DNA from: Malacoraja senta
Taxonomy: Eukaryota
Length of the DNA stretch: 64,000 nucleotides
NCBI GenBank assembly: GCA_038087875.1
Contig: CM075981.1
Coordinates: 19,840,001-19,904,000, forward strand
Direction of reading: 5' to 3'
In this document: positions 7,090-56,198 of the stretch, one piece after another
Position numbering within the stretch: the stretch's first letter is position 1
Layout of the letters: the number at the start of each line of letters is the position of its first letter
The notes under the pieces: model-generated
Told to the model about the DNA's origin: nothing
The model's input: the letters and a program-made list of their open reading frames with translations, nothing else
Databases searched by the model: none
Position numbers and translations under genes: made by a program

Positions 7090-15634
<8,545 letters not shown>

Positions 15635-16511: not shown

Positions 16512-16557
16512 ATGAAGGCTATTCTTGCCCTCGTCTTTCTCTTCCACTCCGCTGCTG
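16512..16557 (+). CDS. FCER1G: FCER1G exon 1 (signal peptide)
   Basis: Kozak ccaccATG; [15 protein letters not shown] g|gtaagt, phase 1. Confidence 0.88.
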
Positions 16558-19500: not shown

Positions 19501-22500
19501 GGTGACCATATGATGTTCACAACTTCAGTGGTTGGGAAATTATCACTACCTAAACATTTCGTGAAAACACAGTTTTAAATAGCTCTGGTTATCTGATGGA
19601 CAGAGTACAGGGCGAGAGTAAGCTAGTGATCACAATCATGCCCCTTCCTCTGACTTTGCAGAGATAACATGCCTCCCTTATGCTCCGGTGCAGTCTCAAA
19701 CTGCTCTGCTGGTAACAATGACACGAGCAATGGACAAGTACACCACTCACACATTACTAGGACACTGGTGAGACACAGGTTGAAGCTGCCTCATACAGAC
19801 TGAAAAGGCAGGGACAGAGAATTCTGGATCAGATACATGGCTGTACGATTGTGCTGTGGAATGTGTCAGAATTCACTGTAAATGGTGTGGTTCTATTAAC
19901 ATGGTCTGGGTGGGTACCTGCAGGACATTTTGTAGATGGTGCAGGACACTGCGCACCAATGGTGGAGGGAGGGATGTTAGGGCTGAGGGAGGAAATGTTT
20001 TGGAAAGCTAATGGAGAGATGCTTTGGCCTGGATGGTGTCAATCTTCTTGAGTTGATAGAAGTGCACTCACCCAGGCAAGTGGAAAATGTTCTCTCTCAC
20101 CTTGAAAAACACCAAATTTTAGGTGTAAACCCCAAATAAAAAATGGTAATATTGGAGTCAACAACGTGGAAGCGTATCCATGCAGCTAACGGGAAAGAGA
20201 GTGTAGGAAAGGTCATGTTTAAACTAACAGGGCAGGGGGATGGGACCAAATGCAAGGAGACAGAGGGCCATAAAAGGAGGACAGATGCAAAAGGCAGAAG
20301 GGAGATAAGAAAAATTAACCTGAAAGCTTTGTGCCTTAATGCGAGAAGCATTCGAAATAAGGTGGAGGAGTTGAATGCAGTTAGTAGTTAAGGGATATTG
20401 TAATGTTCCATTACCTTTGAAGCATATGTCCCTATGAGTAGGTCAATGCCAGAGTCTATTTCAGGAATCTTGATATCCTTCAAGTAAGGCCATTGTAACA
20501 GCTCTTCCTGTCTGGGAATGTTCAGCTGAGAAACAGGCATGGTCTTGTGTGTGAACACATCAGATAGTTGAATGACATCGTCTTTGTCCAGACTAGATAT
20601 TTCCAAACCTGAGATTTGGTGACTGATCACAGGCTTCATCTGGTTCATGGTACCCAAGAGAATACTAGCCTTTTGTCCTGTAATTTTCTGCCTTCTCATC
20701 AAGCTTTCTGTGCAAAAGGTCGATTAGCTTCCATGATCCCAAAATGCATATGTTTGCAACGCTGTGTCCCCCTCATGGCTTTTTTACCTGTACTGGTACA
20801 ATGGAGAAGATGCAGGCTTCTTCACTGGCCCCAATATGCTGCATATATGAGGTGAGGGAACAGCATTACTCACAATTGGCATCTCATTCTGTTCTGTATG
20901 CTTTGGCTTCTCTTTGTTCTTTTGTTCAATGTGAAGTATTTCAGGATGGTTTTGGTTGCACACACACACAAGTCAAACAACTCTTGCAGTCTCTGCTCAT
21001 GTGTCCTATTTTCAAACATCCAAAGCAGACTCCCTTCTCCTTCAAGAAGTCTATCCTTTTTCTGTGCCCCCTCTCCCTGATCTGTGGACACCACCCCAAT
21101 GTGTGACCACTTTTATTACAGAACAAACAAGAACCTTGAGAATTTGGTGGTAGATATATTTCTTCGCATTCCACTTGTTGTCAGATTTTCTTGCACTGGT
21201 GTTTCTACAGGTATTATAGTTGTTGTAAAACTGCTTCCTCTTGGTCCTGACCTTTCCCTTGCTTTAACAAAAGTACCGCCTTTGACAGTTGCAATTGGCC
21301 TAGCATCCTGAATGTTTCCAAAAAGTGGATCGGACAGTATCTTCACTTGTCTCTCCATGAAGTCTACCAGGTCAGAAAATCTAGTTCGCTGTCCAAGTTG
21401 CTCTTATAGCTGACATGCACTATCCCTCCACTTGTCTCTGATCTTGTATGGCAGCTTTAGAGGATGGTCTTCATATTGGAAGCAACATTCATTTCCTCCA
21501 TATAGGTGAGATGTGCCATTGCATTGCAACAACCTCTAATGAACAGTGAGCCTGCTTCCAATGCCTTCACATCCTCTGGTCTGATCACTGACCAGGCAAA
21601 TACCTTGACCATATATGCAGTGGCAATCTTATGTTCATTACCAAAATGTTTTTTAAGCAGATCTTTTGCTCTTTGATAGCCCTGGGCTGGAGGCAAATGT
21701 TGGCAACTCGAAGAGGGTCTTTTGGATACCCTCTTGTGTATTGCTCTAGAAATTGCAACCAACCACATGCCCTGATGTAAACTTCATACTGCTTCCTCTT
21801 TCAACACCATCAAAAACATGAATGTCTCTTGGTGGTAAAGTAGAAGAGAGATTTTGTTGAGCCAGAAGAGCAGTGATGTCAGTACATTTTGCCCTTGAAG
21901 AGAATATTGAGTTAGAAGGGTCTTATCATGAGCTCCAACAGATGCTCCATGAGTTGTTTGTTTTGGTCTAACAACCAGTTGCTGGGAGGAAGATCAGTGC
22001 CCATCAACACATTCTGTCTTTGTTGCACTTGATCAGATAAGTATTCATTTGCATGTGGATTTAATTTAGCTGATGCTTCCTTTTGAGCAGTTCCTCTTCT
22101 CAAGTAAGAGTTCATCCCATCAGATACTCTAGAGCTGTTTCGTGATCCCTTGGCCTCAAGTACATTGAAGGTACACAATAATGCTGGAGAAACTCAGCGG
22201 GTGCAGCAGCATCTATGGAGCGAAGGAAATAGGCAATGTTTCGTGCCGAAACCCTTCTTCAGACTGATGGGGGGTGGGGAGAAGAAAGGAAAAAGGCGGA
22301 GGAGGAGCCCGAGGGCTGAGGGATGGGAGGAGACAGCCCGAGGGCTGAGGAAGGGGAGGAGACAGCAAGGGCTAACAGAATTGGGGGAATCCAATGTTCT
22401 GTTAGCTCTTGCTGTCTCGTCCCTTCCTCAGCCCTCGGGGTGTCTCCTCCCATCCCTCAGCCCTCGGGCTCCTCCTCCGCCTTTTTCCTTTCTTCTCCCC

Positions 22501-25500
22501 ACCCCCCATCTGTCTGAAGAAGGGTTTCGGCCCGAAACGTTGCCTATTTCCTTCGCTCCATAGATGCTGCTGCACCCGCTGAGTTTCTCCAGCATTTTTG
22601 TGTACCTTCGATTTTCCAGCATCTGCAGTTCCTTCTTAAACACTCAAGTATATTGATCCTTGCATTGGCTGCTGCCAGCTCTGTCTCTAGTTCCAACTGT
22701 TCCATCTCTCTTTTCAACTGTTCCTCTTGTGCCTCAAACTCAAGCTTGGCATTGGTTGCTGCCAGCTCAGTCTCTCTTTTCATTTGCTCTTCTTGTGCCT
22801 CAAGGTTGTGCTTTTTTCCCCATGGTAGCAGCCCGGTCCAAGAGAGCAGCCCTAACTGCCTGAGCTTTAATACGAGCAGAGACCGTTGAAGATGCACATG
22901 ATGAGGGACTAGATTTGTGACTTAATTTAGGCTTTGAGACATTTGAAACACTCATCAAGTCCAATTTCATCTGAGTTTACAACACTCTGTTGTATGGCAC
23001 TTTCAGCTATGGAGTGTGTAGCTTGCTGTCCAATATCAGATAACCACACCTTTACATCTTGTATCAAGTCATTAAAAGTTTCCATTCTCAGTTCAAATCC
23101 CTGATTTTCCCTTTCAAGCTCCTTTTCAGGCAGTGGTACCTTCACATGGTTTTCACTGACTTCATAGAGCTTGATTAATTGAACCAAGTTAGATTGTACT
23201 TCATTTTCATTTCCCTTTGATTTCATGAGCTTTCAACTTTCCAATTAACTTGTTAGCTTGTTTACATATCGAGTTTCTTGTCTTCTGACACTTTTCCACG
23301 AACAAGTCCCAGCCTTTGTCAGTGTGTTTAATAACTCTTCTTTCCTTTTCAGAATTATTTCCAACATCGCCATCTTGTAACTGAACTTTAGACATACTTG
23401 TCCACTATCCCTTTAAGTCTCGTTGATGTGAAAGCCGTATGCCTGCGGCTGGTATTTCAAACGGCTGATATCGCTCTGATTCTCAAGGTCACTTCTCAAT
23501 TCTCCATTTTAGTAGCCGGTTTCCAATACAGCTTATATATAGCTTCACCAATAAAGCTTAATGCTCTCCCTGCGCGTCGGCTTTCGAGGTTTCCAATTTT
23601 CCGTTAGTCAGATTAGCGAAGGTGGCGACCGTAACCAGTTGATCGGGAATGGCGGCGTCAGGCTGGTGAAGTAAAACAATCCTTGTTCCCAGGTTTTCAC
23701 ATGCTCCAGTTTCACTGAGCTGGTTTTTCACTTAAATATAATGGCAACTTTCCCACTCGTCCAGTGTCCAGCTTTCCGTTGCCATTAGTAATGTAGGAGC
23801 GATCTTATGCAGATCAAATAGAACCGATTTTCCAGTCATTATTTAGTGGTTCTTTATTGAAGTGGTTGTACAAACAAAGAGATGAGTGTACCAGGTTTTC
23901 CTTATTCTGCATACAAGTTGTAGCTAGCTGTTCTTCCCGGTCTGGTGGTCTGGTGAAAAAACTATGCTCTCCACCCCTGTGCCCTGGTCTGCCCCTCCCT
24001 GTCCACAATGCCCTCTGTGCATTTAATGACCGCCGGTCAAGTGTCCAAAATAATACTGCAAAATTATCTAGCCAAAATAATATAATATGCCGACAGTAGC
24101 TAACCTAAACATAATTGCTCCTACACACCGGCCCCCAATTTTTGTCTTACGTATATAACGAACAATTACCAATAAACATTAAGTTATAAAACTTTTACAC
24201 TTCACCGCAACAAGACAGTCTCTCCCAATGAGGCTGTTCCCAATGGACTGCTCCGCTGGTGCCTGGCGTCATTTTGTACGCCACTAGGAACAGTCATCCA
24301 GGGATACTAACGGGAGAGAAGGAAGAAAGAGGGAGGGTAGAAGGAGAGAGCGATGGGGAGAAGGAAAGAGGAGAGGAGAAAGATGAGGAAAGTGAGGGGG
24401 AGAGGGGTGGACAAAGGAAACGAGACGGGGCGAGGTGGGTGTGGGCGGGCGGGAGGTACGAAGACGGGAAGCCACCTGGTACCTCTCATTAGGTCCTACT
24501 GTGTTCGACATCCTCTGATCCTCCACTCACTTCTTTCTCGGCAGCTGGACTGCAGGAGCCCGAGATCTGTTACGTTCTGGACGCCATTCTGTTCATCTAT
24601 GGGACGGTGTTAACGGCTCTGTACTGCCGTCTGAAGGTGAGTGGACAGCGAGTGGACAGCTAGCAATGAGATAGAATCCTAGTCTCTGGCGCTATAAGGC
24701 TGTAATGGTAAATCTGCTCTCTCACACTCAACACACTCGGCAACACCTCAACCCCAGCGCCCTGTTGTAACACCTCGACCCAGCTGTAAACACCAGTGGA
24801 GATATTGGTGTGGTATTGATACAGAGCGAAGGGTTGCTGGGGGACAGTGTGAGGGAACTTGGTCACGCTTGGAGATATAGTCAGTGACGCGGGGCGCTGG
24901 GAAGGTATTGGAAGAATGAAAGAATTTGGATGGATCTGTGGTTGGTACCATTGTATCCAATGAGTAACGGTGTGAAGGCGAGTTCCTCACTTGGCAAACA
25001 CGTTACGGGGTTGTAATGTAACGACAGACAATTCACTTTCCTTCGGACGAGGCTCGGAGTACAAGAGTAGGAGGGGGTGCATGATCCGTGCCCAACACCA
25101 GTTAGACCCCAGCCTGACCCTGGGGACAGTTCTGGTCACCATCTCCAGGAGAGACGGGTCACACTGGGCTAGGGATTTACCAGGACGTTGCCTGGACTGG
25201 AACTTTGTCACTGTGAGGAAAAATCGGAGAGGCTGAGTTGATTTCCGTGGACAGAGGGTTGTTGGGAGAAGTGGGGATTATGCAGATGTAACCAGGCACG
25301 TATTCTCTCTTTTAGGCACACTCTATCTCACACACTCAGAAGAGACACACATACTCACACGCAGTGTCACACGCACTCATACACACACAGACAGTCACAA
25401 ACTCACACACTCACAACATACACCGTTACACACGTCTCACCCTCAAACATTCTCTCACTCACTGCACAAGTGCTTCCCAAATTTGCAATGTCCAATTCTC

Positions 25501-27107
25501 ATTCACATCGACGGGGTGTGTGTGGAAGGGGCTCCGCTGGCTGGGGTGTCTGGAACCAGGGATCTCTGTTTCGGAGTGAAGGGGTCGGCATTTCAGGGCA
25601 GAGACGGATAGAAATGTCTTCCCCCCACTTTGGAATTCTCTCCCCCAGAGGCTGTGGGGACTCAGTCACTGAGGAGATTCCGGGCAGATCGCTGGGGTTT
25701 GGGATGTTGAGGAACCCGAGGGTTTGGGGGTTCGTGCGGGAGGGAGGAGCTGGAGGAAATTATCCGCCGTGGTCTCTCTCATTGAATGGGGCAGCAGAAA
25801 CGAGGGCCCGAGTGGCCTCTCCTGCTCTGTATCTCGTGTTCTGAAGGGCGGGGGGTGGCCGGCGCTGCCATCTTGCAACAATTACCCACGCACTGAAGGC
25901 TAACGTAAACCTTTCTCAATCAATCGACACAGATCTTGAATCGGAAGAAGGAAAATGCGGCGGCTGGGGAGTTAAATTATGAGGTGAGGCGAGAGCTTGG
26001 GCCGCGGGGAGGGGAGGGGGGGGGTGGCTGTCATCTGGCTGGATTTAGGAACAGACCCCCCACCCCCTCCCGATCGCGGGCCTGACACCTCAACCAAAGG
26101 CGGTGGGAGGGTTAATGCCACAGATGGGGAACGATGTGTGAATGGGCAAAGGGAGTGAGAGGGTTAATGTCACGGACTTTAACCGGTATCTGTGTCCCTG
26201 GCAGCACCTGCAGATAGGAACCAAGGACATCTATGAGGAGATAAAGGGAGAAAAACGGACTGGTGGCGGTGGAAAAAAGGTGAGTCCTGATCAAATGACG
26301 GCCGTATGTGACGGGACAGTGTAGCGGGAGCTTCACCCCGTGTCTGCCAGTGTGTGGCAGATGGTGCGGTTGTTGCAAGCACTTAGTTAGTTATTTTTCT
26401 CACTTTCTTCTCTCCCCACAGCAAGAAGAGGGCATTTACACGGTATGGACATGGTCTTTTTTGCTCCGCATATGTCTCTCGGCCAATCTCCCTCTCCCTC
26501 TCCCTCTGCTCTCTCTCTCTCTCGCTCTCATCCCTGCCTCCGCTAACTTAATAACTGTCTGACTCTCTCACCCCCTCTCCCCCTCGCATTTTCGTGTCTT
26601 TCTGTTGTATCTTTTCACTGGTTTCCGCTCTATCCATGTTTTCCACTTCATCACTTTCTTCGTCTCTCAAGATCTCCCTTTCTTTCACTATTTTTGTGTG
26701 CTCATCTCTGAATTTATCTAACTCTCTTCCACTTTTTCCCACACTACCACCCTCTCTCTCTCTTTCTCACTTTTTTTTCTCTCCATCCTTCTCTGTCCAC
26801 CTCTCTCACTCCCACCCTCTCCCTCTCACCCTCTCCCTTCCTAGCTTTCCCCTCGTCCCACCCCCTCTCTACCCGCCTCTCCTCCTCCCTGCTTCCCAGT
26901 TGATCTCTAACCCCATTCCCCCTCTCTCTGCTCACCTCTCTCTCCACTCCTCCCCCTACCCCCCCCCCCTCTCTCCAACCACCCCCTCCGCCCCCCACCC
27001 CCCATCTCAGTTTGTATCTAACCCTTCTCTCTCTCCCCCAGGGTCTGGGAGAGCACCATGTTGATACGTACGAATCTCTGCAGCGCCAGGTCCCTGGAAG
27101 GAAGTAG
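16512..27107 (+). CDS. FCER1G: Fc receptor common gamma chain (FcR-gamma) homolog, 6 exons, 116 aa, two ITAMs
   Basis: [118 protein letters not shown] CxxLD..YCRLK signature; 92-nt exon 2 and 21-nt penultimate exon as in human FCER1G; immediately downstream of NDUFS2 as in mammals. Confidence 0.93.
16740..16960. repeat. Degenerate C-rich minisatellite in FCER1G intron 1
   Basis: Recurring ccctgtaacc / ccctgcccta. Confidence 0.75.
18110..18720 (+). mobile_element. Rex1/Babar LINE 3' fragment
   Basis: [13 protein letters not shown]...DLY..KC..RA..I..DPYH...LFQLL.SG.R; cttgacttga tail. Confidence 0.88.
22167..22642. mobile_element. Penelope-like element ends in inverted arrangement, inserted in the BEL gag
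   Basis: ~215-bp inverted arms; flanking duplication ctcaagta(c/t)att at 22155-22166 and 22643-22654. Confidence 0.85.
22514..22543 (+). ncRNA. Minimal hammerhead ribozyme core (Penelope-associated)
   Basis: CTGAAGA-A-GGG TTTCGG CCC-GAAAC GTT; helix I pairing weak, triplet GUU. Confidence 0.5.
24545..24636 (+). CDS. FCER1G: FCER1G exon 2 (short ectodomain + TM)
   Basis: cag|ct gga ... ctg aag|gtgagt; (A)[30 protein letters not shown]. Confidence 0.96.
25933..25983 (+). CDS. FCER1G: FCER1G exon 3
   Basis: cag|atc ... tat gag|gtgagg; [17 protein letters not shown]. Confidence 0.88.
26205..26279 (+). CDS. FCER1G: FCER1G extra exon completing ITAM1 (alternative acceptor at 26214)
   Basis: gcag|cac ctg cag ata ... 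aaa aag|gtgagt; [25 protein letters not shown]; phase 0/0. Confidence 0.82.
26422..26442 (+). CDS. FCER1G: FCER1G 21-nt exon
   Basis: cag|caa gaa gag ggc att tac acg|gtatgg; QEEGIYT (human KSDGVYT). Confidence 0.92.
27042..27107 (+). CDS. FCER1G: FCER1G last coding exon
   Basis: cag|ggt ctg ... aag tag tga; [21 protein letters not shown]. Confidence 0.93.
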   Translation, partial: GLGEHHVDTYESLQRQVPGRK

Positions 27108-27666
27108 TGATGCTGCCGATCGCTGGGGCTTGTGTGTGTGTGGGGGGTGGGGCTGTGGGGAGGGGTGGGTAGTGTAGGTGGGAGTGTGGGGATGGGAGTG
27201 TGGGGATGGGAGTGCGGGTGCGGGTGGATGTATGGGGTGGGATTGGGAGTGTTGGGGTTGGGGTGGGACTGGGAGGGTAGGGTAACTGTTCATGATCACC
27301 CAGTCTTCAGCATCAAGACCGCGATGCCCAACATGTTTTGTGCGATTGCAGGAATTGCTCGTCCTTCCTCCTACACCTGGAGGCTCTTAAGCCCCTCGAG
27401 TCTGTCACCTGGGGACAGCAAGGCCATTCAGCCTCTTTCATTCCTCCAACAAAGGTGTGGAAGGAAGCTGGTCTGCTCTGTGACTGGGTGGAGGGAACGC
27501 GGGGACTGTGGGATCTTGTTAAAGAATATTTACATCATATGGGTGGGGTTAGTAACGCTTTGAATCGTGGAGGCAGGAGGTGAGTCACACCTGGTTGAAT
27601 AGATTGATGAACAACTGTCATTTCAGTCATTCGCTGCTCTTGGTTTTATGTGGGTTTATCTTGTGT

Positions 27667-27672
27667 AATAAA
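27667..27672 (+). terminator. Candidate FCER1G polyadenylation signal
   Basis: First AATAAA I noticed after the stop, about 560 nt downstream. Confidence 0.5.
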
Positions 27673-28440
27673 TGTAGCCTTGCAATGGTCTGGTGGTCAA
27701 GTGTCATTATTATCAAGAGGCTTCACTCCAGGCTGGGGGTTGAATCAATAGGCACAGGGTGTGGCCTCTCTCTAAACTCCCAGGCCCAAGCTTTGTGGCC
27801 TCACACTAAACTTCAACCTCTGATCCTACCTCAGCAACGAAACATTATTGATCACCTCTTCCTCTACCATGGTCTATGCACATGTGATGCTGCTGTAAGC
27901 AAGATTTACACTGCACCCGCACCTCACCGTATTTGAACAACTTACAGTGAAGCCGACTCGAGGCCTAGCTCTAAATCTAAGGCTCAGACTTTGTGGTTTA
28001 GCTCTATTAAACAGCCCAGGGTTTTGGTGACACAAGAGACTTGAGCAAAATGTTGTGTTAGAGGAACTCTACAGGCAGGCCAGCATCAGTGGAGAGAAAT
28101 GGGCAGATGATGTTTTGGGTTGGGACTTTTCTTCAGACTGATGGTGTAGAGGGGAGATAGGTTGTAAAAGGTGAGTGGAAGAAGTGGGGCAGGAGTCGGC
28201 AAATGATAGGTAGATTCAAGTGAGGAGAGGTTAATTGGCAGATTGGTCATGTGGGAGAGAGAAGAGTGGAGATAGTAACCAATCCAGAATGTCTGAAGTG
28301 GAAAACGTAAAGGGGCTGTACGATGGTGGAATTGATAAGGAAGAGAATCAAGAGTGTTTAATTGGCATATGTACCAACCGCAGAATAATGAAATTCTCAC
28401 TGGCAGCAACATAACACCTCTGTACACAATACACATATAT

Positions 28441-40654: not shown

Positions 40655-42350
40655 GTCAGAGTGAGGATCAGGTTTAGGGAGGCTGGTGGTCCCCGGGTGT
40701 CCGAGGATCATGTGATGGAACAGTGCATAGGAAACTATGCTCTATGTGTAACCCGTATCCCAGGATGGGATCTTTGCCCCCTGTGTCCATGCTGACTATC
40801 AAGTAGCCATTTCTACTCATTCCACTTTGCTGACCTTGCACTGTACATAATCATACATCCCTGGGCCATACACATGCATTTAGAATGTCCACCTCCACCA
40901 CCCTCTCACTCAGTGTGTTCCAAGTTGCAACAACCCTGGTGAAACAAAAAATTCTCCTTCCCCTTACCCTGAACCTATGCTTTCTGGTTACAGGCTCTTC
41001 GGCTGTGGACTTTACATGCCCTCTCTATTCCCCTCATAATTCCTATGATTTAAATCTCCTCCCCCTCAGCCTCCAACCCTCTCTATCTTCATCAGTTCTA
41101 TGCCAGGCAACATCCAGGGGAGTCTCTGCTGCAATCACTCCATGGTGCAATCCCGTCCTTCCTGTAAATGTGAAGACCAGAAGTGTACATGATATTCCAA
41201 ATGTGGCCTGAATAATGTGGTAAAAGTTGGACCATAACCTCCCTGCTCCTTTACTCTTAAGCCCCCAAGTCTCCTTTCTTGACCCTGTGCTGCCACCTCC
41301 AGGCAGTTTTGGACATATACCAAGGTCCTCTGTTCCTCATTACTCCCCGTGTATGTCCTACCCTGTTAGTCCGCCCAAACTTAGTCCGCATCACACTTGT
41401 GGGATTAAACTTGCTCTGGATCCTGTGGGCTGTTAACATGATGACCAGCATCCCACGTAGAACCTTGTCAAAGGCCTTGCTGAAGTCCTTCTACACACCA
41501 TCAATCACATTAGAGCGATGGAATGGTTGACGTTTCTGATCGAGGCCCTCCTTCAGACCCGTAACGTCACCCATTCCTTCTCTCCAGAGATGCTGCCTGT
41601 CCCGCTGAGTTATTCCAGCATTTTGTGTCTATCCTCGGTTTAAACCAGCATCTGCAGTTCCTGCCTATACTTCAATCACACTGTCCATATCAACACCTTT
41701 TCTTATTTTCTTATTTCTTCAAAAAACTCAATCAAACTTAACCCTGTCCATAGGAATTGTTTTAGCGACTACCCTTCCATTGATATTATAGATTCACTGA
41801 CCAATAATTTCCAGACATTCCTGCTGTCCCTTTGAATGAAGGTATAATATTCATTGTCCTGCAGTCGTTTGTCTCATGCCTGACCTGTGGCCGGTAAAAG
41901 ATTTGAAATTATTTGTCGAGATTCAGCAATTTCCTCCCTTGCCGTCCACAAATAGGATATACCTCATCAGGCCCTGGGGATTTATCCACCTATCAGCCTG
42001 CTAAGCCATCACGTCCACCTTTCTAATGATGAAATTATGATGAACTTCTACAGGTGTACAGTAAATAGAGTATATTGACTGGTTGCATCACGGCCTAGTT
42101 CGGCAACTTGAATGCCCAGAAGCGAAGGATACTGTAAAAAGTTGTGCACGCTGCCCAGTCCATCCGGGTTCTGACCTCCCCATCATCAAAGGGATTTGCA
42201 GGAGAACTGCCTCGAAAAAGTAGCCAGCATCATCAGAGACCGACACCACCCTGGCCACACATTCATTTCACCCCTGCCATTGGGAAGAAGGTACAGGAGC
42301 CTGAAAACAGTAACGTCCAGGTTCAGGAACAGCTTCTTCCCTACAGCCAT

Positions 42351-42600
42351 AACTTAGACTTAGACGTAGTTCCTCCCACACTGTTGAGTGCATTGGTCAG
42401 CAAGCTTTCGCCATTCTGTTCGGTTAGGTGCGACGTCTTCCACCCTCGATAGGTTTGCGTCCCGGGCTTCCAAATCCTTCTGGAATGTTCGCCTCCATAT
42501 GAGTTTTGGTCGGCCTCTTTTCATTCTTCTGTCAGGTTGCCATGTCATTGCTATCTTAGGTGCACGTTCTGGTGACATTCTGAGTACATGTCCTGCAATA
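42351..42600 (-). mobile_element. RTE-clade LINE 3' end inserted in a Rex1 fragment (duplicate at 49464-49713)
   Basis: GHVLRM...KRGRPK..WRRT..KDL; (AAGTCT)n tail; TSD acagccat at 42343-42350 and 42601-42608. Confidence 0.88.
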
Positions 42601-42704
42601 ACAGCCATTAGGCTATTAAATACTACAACCTCCAAATAAGCTCTGAACTACATAGACTATTATTGTTATTATATTATTATTGTTTGTTGGTTTATGTGTA
42701 CGTA

Positions 42705-42712
42705 TGTGTGTG

Positions 42713-42752
<40 letters not shown>
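42705..42752. repeat. (TG)n(TA)n microsatellite (duplicate at ~49815-49872)
   Basis: Direct observation. Confidence 0.95.
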
Positions 42753-42754
<2 letters not shown>

Positions 42755-42949
42755 TTATCTGTGTATAAGTGAGTATGTGTATATGGACACACATTCTGCT
42801 GGGCTGCTGCAAGTAAGAATTTCATGGTTCTATCAGGGACATATGACAATAAAACACTCTTGACTCTTGAATAACCCCAATCCCCTTCCTGAATTCTCCA
42901 CCTATAATGCCCTTGTCCTTAGTGAAGGCAGATGGGAAGGATTTTGTGC

Positions 42950-43090
42950 AACACAGTGGCGTAGCGGTAGAGTTACAGCCTTATAGCACCAGAGACCCAG
43001 ACCCAGAATGATCCCAGAACATGAATCACTGGTCGCCACGGACTAAGTGAGCTGAAGAGCCTGTTTCTGCACTGTATCTCTAATGTCTAA
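42950..43090 (+). mobile_element. Internally deleted tRNA-derived SINE (duplicate at ~50040-50180)
   Basis: A-box tggcgtagcggt, ccagagaccc, CR1-like 3' end. Confidence 0.7.
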
Positions 43091-43767
43091 ATTTAAGATT
43101 TCATCCACACTCGGGTTCCATGCATAGATTGCTCCCTTGGTCCTTCAAGGGCCCAACTATTCCACCTGGATACTCTCTCACTCACTCACATTCATAAAAT
43201 GTAATGGAATTTTTCTTAACCTTCTTTGCTAGTGACCATATGTATATGGTCACACTTTGCAAACCCAACTTCCTTTCTCGGAACGCTCTCTACTGAAGGC
43301 CAGCCCATTTTCAGTCCTTAGTACTGCCCATATACTTCCTTTGATTTATTTATTAAACCCCTGATATCATGACAGTTAGGGTACCTTGGAGTTGCTGTCC
43401 TCACCATTCAACATGATAGAACTTGTTAGCCATGAAATCTCACTATTCACTTTTAAAGGACTCCCCCTGGTCAGATGTAGATATCCCCATGTAGATTTAC
43501 CCAGTGCCAGTTCTGTCACTCCTTCTCTCCCAGCAGGATATCTGTACGCTTACTGGTGTCTCTCAGTCCCTCTCTCTCATGGGGATATCTGTTCACTGAC
43601 CGATGTCTCTCAGTCCCTCTCTCAGGCGGATATCTGTTCACTGACTGGTGTCTCTCAGGCCCTTTCTCTCAGGGAGCGTAAGGATGGGATGGATCCATCC
43701 CTCCCATGTCACTGGGAGTGAGAGGATGGGATTAAGCACAGAATCTTTCCTCCTCCCTCTGTTGCAG

Positions 43768-47553: not shown

Positions 47554-49826
47554 AGGTTCAGGTCGAGATCCTTCTTTAAGTTCAGGACCGTTGTCTCTGA
47601 ATTAACCATGTAACTCTCCATCCTAATGCAGAATTCTACCATATTATGGTCACTGTTGCCCAAGATTGCTAACTAATCCTTCCTTATTACACAATACCCA
47701 GTCTAGGATGGTTCAGGGCCAGTATGGGCTGGGTCACACTAAGGTGTATACGGGACACGGGGACCACTCACAGGAGTGACAAAAGACATGGAGCTGGAGA
47801 GAAATTCCCGGGATTCCCGAGGATCATGTGATGGAACAGTGCATAGGAAACTATGCTCTATGTGTAACCCGTATCCCAGGATGGGATCTTTGCCCCTGTG
47901 TCCATGCTGACTATCAAGTAGCCATTTCTACTCATTCCACTTTGCTGACCTTGCACTGTACATAATCATACATCCCTGGGCCATACACATGCATTTAGAA
48001 TGTCCACCTCCACCACCCTCTCACTCATTGTGTTCCAAGTTGCAACCACCCTGGTGAAACAAAAAATTCTCCTTCCCCTTACCCTGAACCTATGCTTTCT
48101 GGTTACAGGCTCTTCGGCTGTGGACTTTACATGCCCTCTCTATTCCCCTCATAATTCCTATGATTTAAATCTCCTCCCCCTCAGCCTCCAACCCTCTCTA
48201 TCTTCATCAGTTCTATGCCAGGCAACATCCAGGGGAGTCTCTGCTGCAATCACTCCATGGTGCAATCCCGTCCTTCCTGTAAATGTGAAGACCAGAAGTG
48301 TACATGATATTCCAAATGTGGCCTGAATAATGTGGTAAAAGTTGGACCATAACCTCCCTGCTCCTTTACTCTTAAGCCCCCAAGTCTCCTTTCTTAACCC
48401 TGTACTGCCACCTCCAGGCAGCTTTGGACATATACCAAGGTCCTCTGTTCCTCATTACTCCCCGTGTGTCCTACCCTGTTAGTCCGCCCAAACTTAGTCC
48501 GCATCACACTTGTAGGATTAAACTTGCTTTGGATCCTGTGGGCTGTTAAAATGATGACCAGCATCCCACGTGGAACCTTGTCAAAGGCCTTGCTGAAGTC
48601 CTTCTACACACCATCAATCACATTGGAGCGATGGAATGGTTGACGTTTCTGATCGAGGCCCTACTTCAGACCCGTAACGTCACCCATTCCTTCTCTCCAG
48701 AGATGCTGCCTATCCCGCTGAGTTATTCCAGCATTTTGTGTCTCTCCTCAGTTTAAACCAGCATCTGCAGTTCCTGCCTATACTTCAATCACACTGTCCA
48801 TATCAACACCTTTTCTTATTTTCTTATTTCTTCAAAAAACTCAATCAAACTTAACCCTGTCCATAGGAATTGTTTTAGCGACTACCCTTCCATTGATATT
48901 ATAGACTCACTGACCAATAATTTCCAGACATTCCTGCTGTCCCTTTGAATGAAGGTATATTATTCATTGTCCTGCAGTCGTTTGTCTCATGCCTGACCTG
49001 TGGCCGGTAAAAGATTTGAAATTATTTGTCGAGATCCTGCTATTTCCTCCCTTGCCGTCCACAAATAGGATATACCTCATCAGGCCCTGGGGATTTATCC
49101 ACCTCTCAGCCTGCTAAGCCATCACGTCCACCTTTCTAATGATGAAATTATGATGAACTTCTACAGGTGTACAGTAGATAGAGTATATTGACTGGTTGCA
49201 TCACGGCCTAGTTCGGCAACTTGAATGCCCAGAAGCGAAGGATACTGTAAAAAGTTGTGCACGCTGCCCAGTCCATCCGGGTTCTGACCTCCCCATCATC
49301 AAAGGGATTTACAGGAGAACTGCCTCGAAAAAGTAGCCAGCATCATCAGAGACCGACACCACCCTGGCCACACATTCATTTCACCCCTGCCATTGGGAAG
49401 AAGGTACAGGAGCCTGAAAACAGTAACGTCCAGGTCCAGGAACAGCTTCTTCCCTACAGCCATAACTTAGACTTAGACGTAGTTCCTCCCACACTGTTGA
49501 GTGCATTGGTCAGCAAGCTTTCGCCATTCTGTTCGGTTAGGTGCGACGTCTTCCACCCTCGATAGGTTTGCGTCCCGGGCTTCCAAATCCTTCTGCAATG
49601 TTCGCCTCCATGTGAGTTTTGGTCGGCCTCTTTTCATTCTTCTGTCAGGTTGCCATGTCATTGCTATCTTAGGTGCACGTTCTGGTGACATTCTGAGTAC
49701 ATGTCCTGCAATAACAGCCATTAGGCTATTAAATACTACAACCTCCAAATAAGCTCTGAACTACATAGACTATTATTGTTATTATATTATTATTGTTTGT
49801 TGGTTTATGTGTACGTATGTGTGTGC

Positions 49827-49868
<42 letters not shown>

Positions 49869-50841
49869 ATATGTACACACATTCTGCTGGGCTGCTGCAA
49901 GTAAGGATTTCATGGTTCTATCTGGGACATATGACAATAAAACACTCTTGACTCTTGAATAACCCCAATCCCCTTCCTGAATTATCCACCTATAATGTCC
50001 TTGTCCTTAGTGAAGGCAGATGGAAAGGATTTTGGGCAACACAGTGGCGTAGCGGTAGAGTTACGGCCTTATAGCACCAGAGACCCAGACCCAGAATGAT
50101 CCCAGAACATGAATCACTGGTCGCCATGAACTAAGTGAGCTGAAGAGCCTGTTTCTGCACTGTATCTCTAATGTCTAAATTTAAGATTTCATCCACACTC
50201 TGGTTCCATGCATAGATTGCTCCCTTGGTCCTTCAAGGGCCCAACTATTCCACCTGGATATTCTCTCACTCACTCACATTCATAAAATGCAATGGAATTT
50301 TTCTTAACCTTCTTTGCTAGTGACCATATGTATATGGTCACACTTTGCAAACCCAACTTCCTTTCTCGGAACGCTCTCTACTGAAGGCCAGCCCATTTTC
50401 AGTCCTTAGTACTGGCCATATGCTTCCTTTGATTTATTTATTAAACCCCTGATATCTTGACATTTAGGGTACCCTGGAGTTGCTGTCCTCACCATTCAAC
50501 ATGATAGAACTTGTTAGCCATGAAATCTCACTATTCACTTTTAAAGGACTCCCCCTGGTCAGATGTAGATTTACCCAGTGCCATTTCTGTCACTCCTTCT
50601 CTCCCAGCAGGATATCTGTACACTGACTGGTGTCTCTCAGTCCCTCTCTCTCATGGGGATATCTGTTCACTGACCGATGTCTATCAGTCCCTCTCTCAGG
50701 CGGATATCTGTTCACTGACCGATGTCTCTCAGTCCCTTTCTCTCAGGCAGCGTAAGGATGGGATGGATCCATCGCTCCCATGTCACTGGGAATGAGAGGA
50801 TGGGATTAAGCACAGAATCTTTCCTCCTCCCTCTGTTGCAG

Positions 50842-55545: not shown

Positions 55546-55784
55546 GCCAACTTTGGGAGTTTCTGGCTGCACTCCTTGCTCCCGCCTACCTCCTGGATGG
55601 GACGTGTCATCTGGAGCTTGATCTTGGGATCGGGACGTCCTGTAAGCAGCCTCCGATTACGGACCAGGGCTCCAGCACCGTGCCAGGCTGTGCCAGGCCG
55701 CGCCACGCCGCACAGCCCTACCCTGCCCTTTTCACCCTCGACACTCCTGCCCACCCCTGCAGTGGGGAGGTGAGGGTTTTGGGG

Positions 55785-56198
55785 ATGATGTTGGGACGGT
55801 CACTGGGACTGTGGTGCTTGCTGGTGTTGGGGGCGAGGAGGCAGCCGGGGGCACGAGGGCAGCCGGGGATGGTGGTGGGCACGTCACGGCTGCGGCGGGT
55901 GGAGCTGCTGGTGGTGGTGGACGTGGGTCTGGCGCACGCCCTGGGTGGGGATGTGCGCCCCTACGTGCTGGCGCTGCTGGGCGCGGCGGATCGGCTGTAC
56001 AGGCACCCGTCGCTGGGCAGCGCAGTGAGGCTGGTGGTCAGCCGGCTGGAGGTGGTGTGGGACCAGGCCATGGGTCCGCGGGTCGATGCCGACGCCAGGC
56101 AAACTCTGCACGCCTTCTGCCACTGGCAGCGGGAACGGCGGGCACTGGGAGACTGGGGAGAGGCACCGTACGATGCCGCCCTGCTGCTGACACGAGAG
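55785..56198 (+). CDS. ADAMTS-like first coding exon (signal peptide + start of catalytic domain)
   Basis: MMLGRSLGLWCLLVLGA-RRQPGARGQPGMVVGTSRLRR-VELLVVVD...YRHPSLGSAVRLVVSRL...TLHAFCHWQ...YDAALLLTRE|gtagg; acceptor at 55762. Confidence 0.88.

Follow-up and report, generated by a model that had tools for sequence, protein, structure and literature searches.

Structure of the gene

FcR-gamma, the product of FCER1G, is the signalling chain shared by Fc receptors, natural killer (NK) cell receptors, C-type lectins and the platelet collagen receptor. The gene described here lies in a 64,000-nucleotide (nt) stretch of the genome of the skate Malacoraja senta (GenBank assembly GCA_038087875.1, contig CM075981.1, positions 19,840,001 to 19,904,000 of the forward strand), which is called the window below. 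It follows NDUFS2 and comprises six exons, with its ATG at 16512 and its stop at 27107 (Table 1). [quoted passage not shown]

The membrane-proximal motif, ITAM1, depends on an extra exon, exon 4, which is 75 nt long, in phase 0/0, and consists of 25 codons without a stop, flanked by the splice sites ggcag/CAC and AAG/gtgagt. ITAM1 is assembled across exons 3 and 4 as E-L-N-Y-E/H-L-x7-Y-E-E-I, with the exon border after Y-E, and agrees with the full consensus D/E/N-x-x-Y-x-x-L/I-x7-Y-x-x-L/I (consensus as given in PMC4536121). ITAM2, Y-T-G-L-x7-Y-E-S-L, is assembled across exons 5 and 6. A preliminary description of the window had proposed an in-frame exon at 26205-26279, bounded by AG...GTGAGT and in phase 0/0, that creates YEHL-x7-YEEI across the exon 3/4 junction beside the usual YTGL-x7-YESL; translation of the exons bears out the coordinates, phases, splice sites and both motifs. 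The two-ITAM exon structure of skate FCER1G is confirmed.

Between NDUFS2 and the transmembrane (TM) exon, no ATG exon other than exon 1 is signal-like and has a phase-1 donor, and the exon 1 peptide is near-identical to the N-terminus of the Leucoraja protein. The core Cys-Tyr-Val-Leu-Asp and the juxtamembrane Leu-Tyr-Cys-Arg-Leu-Lys are both carried by exon 2. Compared with Leucoraja (locus L001, 19759-19797) and Amblyraja, exon 3 of the window (25933-25983) is longer by 12 nt, or four codons (G-E-L-N), which changes the acidic -3 position of ITAM1 from Ala to Glu.

Table 1. Coordinates of the FCER1G exons and the upstream neighbour in the window
Feature	Position	Strand	Content
NDUFS2	~7140..15634	+	Upstream neighbour; conserved peptides; start approximate, earlier exons left out
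FCER1G exon 1, ATG and signal peptide	16512..16557	+	15 codons and 1 base; donor G/GTAAGT, phase 1
FCER1G exon 2, ectodomain stub and TM	24545..24636	+	Dimerising Cys, membrane Asp, LYCRLK
FCER1G exon 3, juxtamembrane linker	25933..25983	+	Ends E-L-N-Y-E, first half of ITAM1; donor NYE/gtgagg
FCER1G exon 4, extra exon	26205..26279	+	Second half of ITAM1, H-L-x7-Y-E-E-I, and Gly/Lys linker
FCER1G exon 5	26422..26442	+	21 nt; QEEGIYT, first half of ITAM2
FCER1G exon 6, coding part	27042..27107	+	G-L-x7-Y-E-S-L, C-terminus, stop included
FCER1G 3' untranslated region	27108..27690	+	AATAAA at 27667-27672; end inferred from poly(A) signal

Identity of the gene

Assignment of the gene as an FCER1G orthologue is supported by the Pfam match of its TM exon, synteny with NDUFS2, the 21-nt exon with its YTGL ITAM, and phylogeny. 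Exon 2 matches the Pfam family PF11628 (TCR_zetazeta) with 56.9 bits (cut-off 25), and the juxtamembrane LYCRLK is of the gamma type and common to every FcR-gamma protein listed. The features of FCER1G represented by a 21-nt penultimate exon and a C-terminal YTGL-x7-YE(S/T)L ITAM split after Y-T are present. In a maximum likelihood tree of 46 proteins, built on a short alignment of 119 columns with the ITAM columns included, FcR-gamma, together with the window protein, is separated from CD3-zeta (CD247) by a branch with support 100/100, and Leucoraja plus Amblyraja form the sister group of the window protein. All named matches in a search of 5.8 billion proteins were the high-affinity IgE receptor subunit gamma, apart from a few that had no name; the best came from Leucoraja erinacea, at 85% identity (BLASTP) or 91% over the columns of the tree alignment.

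Conserved NDUFS2 peptides occur at 7140, 7236, 11256, 13801 and 15614 on the same strand as FCER1G. One NDUFS2 exon, at 13801-13881, scores 35.4 bits against Pfam Complex1_49kDa (cut-off 24), and the NDUFS2 stop precedes the FCER1G start by about 880 bases. NDUFS2 is likewise followed by FCER1G in loci of the little skate (L001) and a lizard (L005).

A trait of FCER1G from which the skate gene departs is the combination of one ITAM and five exons, as it has two and six. This trait does not define the orthologue group, because the published Xenopus orthologue departs likewise (PMC4536121). The preliminary description had named the gene FCER1G from its TM segment, exon sizes and adjacency to NDUFS2, and Pfam, synteny, the 21-nt exon and the tree uphold that name; of the observations that it had thought capable of undoing its reading, grouping with CD247 is contradicted by the tree, and a third ITAM exon, looked for in the gene span, was not found.

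Use of exon 4 in transcripts

Evidence from transcripts was drawn from four small runs of other organisms aligned at 80% likeness, three of which gave spliced orthologous mRNA contigs. A 375-nt contig (X5 record 19) contains exons 2, 3, 4 and 6. Exons 2, 4 and 6 are present in a 508-nt contig (X2 record 1), the places of exons 3 and 5 being taken by short stretches that do not align, and exons 2, 4 and 5 in a 220-nt contig (X3 record 7), in which the 37 letters between exons 2 and 4 equal a Leucoraja-type exon 3 minus its last two bases. The joints with GT..AG ends are 24636>25933 (X5 record 19), 26279>26422 and 26442>27042, and the joint into exon 4, at 25980>26202, is at most three bases away from the predicted joint, 25983>26205. 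Contigs of the relatives also cover 27273-27632 of the 3' untranslated region.

The contigs of all three related species include exon 4, which disposes of the possibility, raised in the preliminary description, that transcripts always skip 26205-26279. Among the joints listed for these contigs none skips exon 4, assembled contigs being of a kind that drops minor forms. An intronless 1515-nt mRNA contig from Logan encodes a two-ITAM protein of the caecilian type. Isoforms that skip exon 4 are modelled by NCBI in Scyliorhinus torazame (cloudy catshark, 93 residues), Geotrypetes (caecilian, 95 residues) and Lissotriton (newt, 96 residues), and exon 4 may therefore also be usable as a cassette exon.

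Chance and conservation

Intron 3 holds 32 open frames bounded by AG..GT, and only the frames that start at 26205 complete an ITAM. A loose pattern for the second half of an ITAM matches about 0.2% of such frames window-wide, with about 0.05 expected in intron 3. Across the 10.9-kb span of the gene a further ITAM-like exon was looked for and none was found, leaving only one cassette-like exon. In an alignment of elasmobranch and caecilian proteins from 12 species, ITAM1 shows no variation in its two tyrosines, in the Glu that follows the first of them or in the spacing. Since the tyrosines and their spacing are conserved and the transcripts of relatives include exon 4, ITAM1 stands well beyond chance, and the idea that exon 4 is a chance open frame was rejected.

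Comparison of the window with Leucoraja is uninformative as to conservation of exons versus introns, as the introns are themselves 82-90% identical. In the sequences at hand, selection on exon 4 looks concentrated on the motif. The ITAM1 of Callorhinchus has YGIE as its first half and a Tyr-Tyr spacing one residue shorter; this and other departures from the canonical form, detailed below, may be a sign that constraint on ITAM1 has relaxed in certain lineages. PF02189, the Pfam profile for ITAMs, spans 20 positions and is weak even on the accepted ITAM2, giving that of Leucoraja and Amblyraja a sub-threshold 14-15 bits (cut-off 22.2).

Distribution among vertebrates

The extra segment occurs in 14 other cartilaginous fishes, represented by 13 automatic models and one UniProt entry. 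The carriers are the skates Leucoraja and Amblyraja; the rays Mobula (two species), Hypanus and Narcine; the sharks Scyliorhinus (two species), Stegostoma, Hemiscyllium, Carcharodon, Mustelus and Rhincodon; and the elephant shark Callorhinchus, whose entry (V9LFN2) is named 'ITAM-bearing signaling subunit'. The FCER1G proteins of cartilaginous fishes have 113-118 residues, and in the DNA of both Leucoraja and Stegostoma a 75-nt exon lies in the same position and is followed by a 21-nt exon and a coding end of 66 nt. The comparison across genomes envisaged in the preliminary description thus recovers the same extra exon or segment in records of sharks, rays, skates and the elephant shark.

Automatic models extend the segment to the amphibians, where three caecilians and three salamanders carry it beside more than twenty frogs, Xenopus laevis and X. 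tropicalis among these. Nearly all of the full-length amphibian models listed have a canonical ITAM1, the exceptions being short or skip-type models. FcR-gamma has one ITAM in bichir, sturgeon, teleosts, coelacanth, reptiles, birds and mammals, and no lungfish FcR-gamma was among the matches listed in the protein search. For S. canicula, Microcaecilia, Bombina and the coelacanth, exon structure is inferred from proteins only.

Some of the automatic records look faulty. The Rhincodon model (P0014) appears to run past the 21-nt exon into unrelated sequence; a Bombina 'gamma-like' protein of 89 residues (P0017) stops after ITAM1, yet clusters at 90% identity with a full protein of 117 residues; and the 'FcR gamma-like' protein of Sardina (P0123) groups in the tree with CD3-zeta-like proteins.

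FcR-gamma of Xenopus laevis was described as having six exons and two ITAMs and was called unique (Guselnikov et al. 2003, Dev Comp Immunol 27:727; 2015, PMC4536121), and Akula and colleagues (2014) could find no FcR-gamma homologue in cartilaginous fishes (PMC4016189). Current public protein records overtake both statements, and no paper that points this out was found in a literature of incomplete coverage. The two-ITAM form itself is accordingly not new: it was published in the frog, and automatic annotation already has it in sharks, rays and amphibians. Novelty may lie in its span over Chondrichthyes and all Lissamphibia, its probable ancestry and the putative relic left in one-ITAM genes. 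The preliminary description could not say whether the form had been reported for chondrichthyans; it is in print for Xenopus (PMC4536121), and no report on ITAM number in FcR-gamma of cartilaginous fishes was found in a search that had most subscription journals outside it.

Origin of exon 4

Genes with one ITAM bear on the history of the exon. Lizard FCER1G has five exons, of which exon 3 ends in Ile-Tyr-Glu and is followed by a 21-nt exon encoding KVEGIYT; a decayed relic of exon 4 was sought in its intron 3 (552 nt) and none convincing was found. When human FcR-gamma of solved structures is aligned with the skate protein, two blocks match: one ends with a Tyr opposite the first Tyr of ITAM1, the other resumes at the 21-nt exon, and the gap between them is exactly the exon 4 segment. 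The lost exon would have left a relic in the Tyr-Glu at the end of exon 3, which is read in the lizard and indicated by alignment in human.

From 26 amphibian ITAM1 segments a hidden Markov model (HMM) was trained, and every remaining ITAM segment of the family was given a score with it. Skate ITAM1 is the top non-amphibian match (17-25 bits), CD3-zeta ITAM2 comes next (10-12 bits), and gamma ITAM2 and zeta ITAM1 and ITAM3 rank below it. This ranking gives moderate support to the homology of exon 4 between cartilaginous fishes and amphibians, and similarly moderate support to an exon-4 module that would predate the split of gamma and zeta. We therefore hold it fairly likely that exon 4 is ancestral to jawed vertebrates and that ray-finned fishes, coelacanth and amniotes have lost it, and go no further than this because plain parsimony slightly points the other way.

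A more complete scenario, in which the ancestral FcR-gamma had two ITAMs, its ITAM1 module is homologous to CD3-zeta ITAM2, at least three exon losses left relics, and skipping serves as a switch, is offered tentatively, as a conjecture that falls somewhat short of being probable. If it were true, the gamma/zeta ancestor would already have been a multi-ITAM adaptor, and the one-ITAM gamma of mammals, birds, reptiles, coelacanth and ray-finned fishes would stem from at least three separate losses of a 75-nt exon. The terminal Tyr-Glu of exon 3 and the odd 21-nt exon would be relics of those losses, and regulated skipping of exon 4 would act as a two-ITAM/one-ITAM signalling switch in the lineages that keep the exon.

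Proposed function

The skate protein is a gamma-type adaptor with the dimerising Cys, for a disulphide link, and an Asp in the membrane, and activating immune receptors would use it for signalling. Inclusion of exon 4 in the main mRNA would give each chain two sites at which the tandem SH2 domains of Syk/ZAP-70 could dock. By analogy with known ITAMs, Src-family kinases would phosphorylate both motifs, and Syk or ZAP-70 would then bind each doubly phosphorylated ITAM through its tandem SH2 domains. A homodimer would thus present four docking sites, against two in mammals, and the example of CD3-zeta suggests that four sites may confer a higher signal gain on partner receptors or lower their activation threshold. 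The stronger recruitment of Syk/ZAP70 put forward in the preliminary description is likewise a prediction. Because exon 4 is 75 nt long and in phase 0/0, skipping it would yield an in-frame isoform with one ITAM, and splicing could tune the strength of the signal. No TM exon of the NxxR type expected of a partner receptor was found within the window.

The phosphopeptide pYEEI is the preferred ligand of Src-family SH2 domains. The YEEI of the skate motif makes docking of such kinases possible as an extra or rival function.

Weighing of alternatives

It is probable, in our judgement, that the gene is a skate FCER1G orthologue whose two ITAMs are both encoded by the main mRNA, which includes exon 4, and that this form was inherited from an ancestral jawed-vertebrate gene. 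The double-ITAM adaptor which the preliminary description ascribed to this lineage is supported by the identity of the gene, the motif and the transcripts of relatives. Several observations nevertheless count on the other side. The only run of the species that holds the locus, X1, proved to be DNA, with an even depth of about 30-50x over exons and introns, and the contigs of relatives give no share for exon 4 skipping, as assembly loses minor isoforms. Exon 4 evolves faster than its neighbours, with a skate-shark dN (nonsynonymous substitutions per site) of 0.93 versus 0.39 in exons 5 and 6, and its ratio of dN to dS (the synonymous equivalent) of about 0.2 between the window and Leucoraja comes from ten changes on 75 nt, too few to carry weight. 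ITAM1 is not canonical everywhere, being YEVV in Amblyraja (P0075), YEQM in Narcine (P0004) and degenerate in Callorhinchus (P0079); Pfam PF02189 gives it no match in the Leucoraja and Amblyraja orthologues, and exon 4 of the window alone matches no family. The ITAM function of exon 4 in chondrichthyan FcR-gamma is argued from sequence and analogy. Shark ITAM1 is weak against the amphibian profile (0-12 bits), and plain parsimony slightly prefers two gains to three or more losses.

That the gene might be CD247 or a zeta-like paralogue is suggested by its possession of more than one ITAM and by a TM family that Pfam names after CD3-zeta, yet the 100/100 branch, the gamma-type LYCRLK, the NDUFS2 neighbour, six exons instead of eight and the lack of a third ITAM exon in the gene span speak against it, and the elephant shark has a separate three-ITAM CD3-zeta beside its own FcR-gamma; this identity is exceedingly improbable and was rejected. 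Exon 4 might also be mainly a cassette, with a one-ITAM protein dominant in most cells and the two-ITAM form minor or tissue-restricted. Such an arrangement would suit an exon whose omission keeps the frame and for which skipped isoforms are modelled in the catshark, caecilian and newt, but it appears quite improbable given that exon 4 is in the spliced contigs of all three relatives with no skipping joint listed, that its splice sites, AAG/GTGAGT included, are near consensus, and that the two-ITAM model is the first or sole isoform in most annotated species. A different view of the motif, which we consider improbable, is that it does not recruit Syk/ZAP-70 and serves instead, for example, in Src-family SH2 docking or YxxPhi endocytic sorting. 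The exact YEEI of skates, the non-canonical +3 residues of some lineages (YEVV, YEQM, YGIE) and the silence of the Pfam model would fit this. The full E-x-x-Y-x-x-L-x7-Y-x-x-I consensus does not, nor do the Tyr-Tyr spacing that is fixed in 12 aligned species and across amphibians and the intron that splits the motif after Y-x as in every classical ITAM (PMC4536121); moreover, YEEI is specific to skates, and sharks have YHEI or YLGI.

As to origin, the exon could have been gained independently in cartilaginous fishes and amphibians, which would make the skate form a lineage novelty. Among the taxa seen, the exon is limited to Chondrichthyes and Lissamphibia, one ITAM is the rule in bichir, sturgeon, teleosts, coelacanth and amniotes, two gains take fewer steps than three or more losses, and both the weak shark scores and the failure to find a convincing relic in lizard intron 3 would fit. 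Against this, the exons of the two groups lie in the same intron, in the same phase and at nearly equal length; Tyr-Glu closes the preceding exon in both groups, as well as in the exon-less lizard, coelacanth and human; no non-amphibian segment matches the amphibian profile better than skate ITAM1; and CD3-zeta ITAM2, with its 'YSEIG.KGE' tail, is similar to the module. Independent gain is accordingly judged unlikely, though it is the alternative that we take most seriously, and a single ancestral exon 4 is preferred.

Implications

The two-ITAM form is found in cartilaginous fishes and in all three orders of amphibians, and because it spans both groups two statements in the literature are corrected, that of absence from cartilaginous fishes (PMC4016189) and that of uniqueness to Xenopus laevis (PMC4536121). 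The number of ITAMs controls signal strength in the related CD3-zeta, and the distribution suggests that mammals carry a reduced form of what was an older, stronger adaptor. The records also supply natural two-ITAM gamma tails for comparison in work on receptor signalling. Their value is for comparative immunology, and understanding of the family is unchanged.

Other features of the window

Two features lie in FCER1G intron 1. An inverted-repeat, hairpin-like element of about 440 bases at 22180-22620 is a very high-copy repeat of the genome, since its summed contig depth in the DNA run X1 is 2-5 million as compared with about 40 in the flanks. Beside it, on the minus strand at 22650-23400, is a long stretch resembling open coding sequence, which is probably part of a transposable element. 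In an exon-pattern scan the same open frames, with two near-identical peptide pairs, recurred about 7.1 kb apart at 41956-43476 and 49069-50564, which suggests a tandem duplication. An ADAMTS-like gene lies downstream of FCER1G at 55763-56198. In human, ADAMTS4 lies upstream of NDUFS2; the content of the neighbourhood of NDUFS2, FCER1G and the ADAMTS-like gene is conserved and its order rearranged relative to human.

Comparison with known systems

Other FCER1G records from cartilaginous fishes share the extra exon, and the protein of the window is itself absent from the protein collection. Further afield, the closest published counterpart is FcR-gamma of Xenopus laevis, which like the skate gene has six exons, a gamma-type TM segment and an extra exon that creates a membrane-proximal ITAM split after the first Tyr module. 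The two differ in the second half of ITAM1, YEKI in the frog and YEEI in the skate, and in the linker after the motif, which is Gly/Lys-rich in skates. FCER1G of mammals and teleosts has in common with the skate gene the signal and TM exons, the Cys and Asp, LYCRLK, the 21-nt exon, YTGL-x7-YE(S/T)L and the NDUFS2 neighbour, whereas it has five exons, one ITAM and no 75-nt exon, so that the Tyr-Glu of exon 3, as read in a lizard and by alignment in human, is left partnerless.

CD3-zeta (CD247) shares with skate gamma the Pfam TM family and ITAMs that are split after Y-x in phase 0. The preliminary description had stated that each CD247 ITAM is divided by an intron shortly after its first Tyr, and this is indeed seen in CD3-zeta of the elephant shark, where eight exons include a 'second half + linker' exon that alternates with a 'linker + Y-x' exon. 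Skate gamma has one such pair of exons (4 and 5) and zeta two, and skate exons 4, 5 and 6 parallel zeta exons 6, 7 and 8; ITAM1 of skate gamma resembles ITAM2 of CD3-zeta. Unlike skate gamma, CD3-zeta has three ITAMs, eight exons, a different locus and a different juxtamembrane sequence. One-ITAM gamma, two-ITAM gamma and zeta differ by whole exon modules, and the designation of the skate gene as a structural intermediate between FCER1G and CD247 is a fair one.

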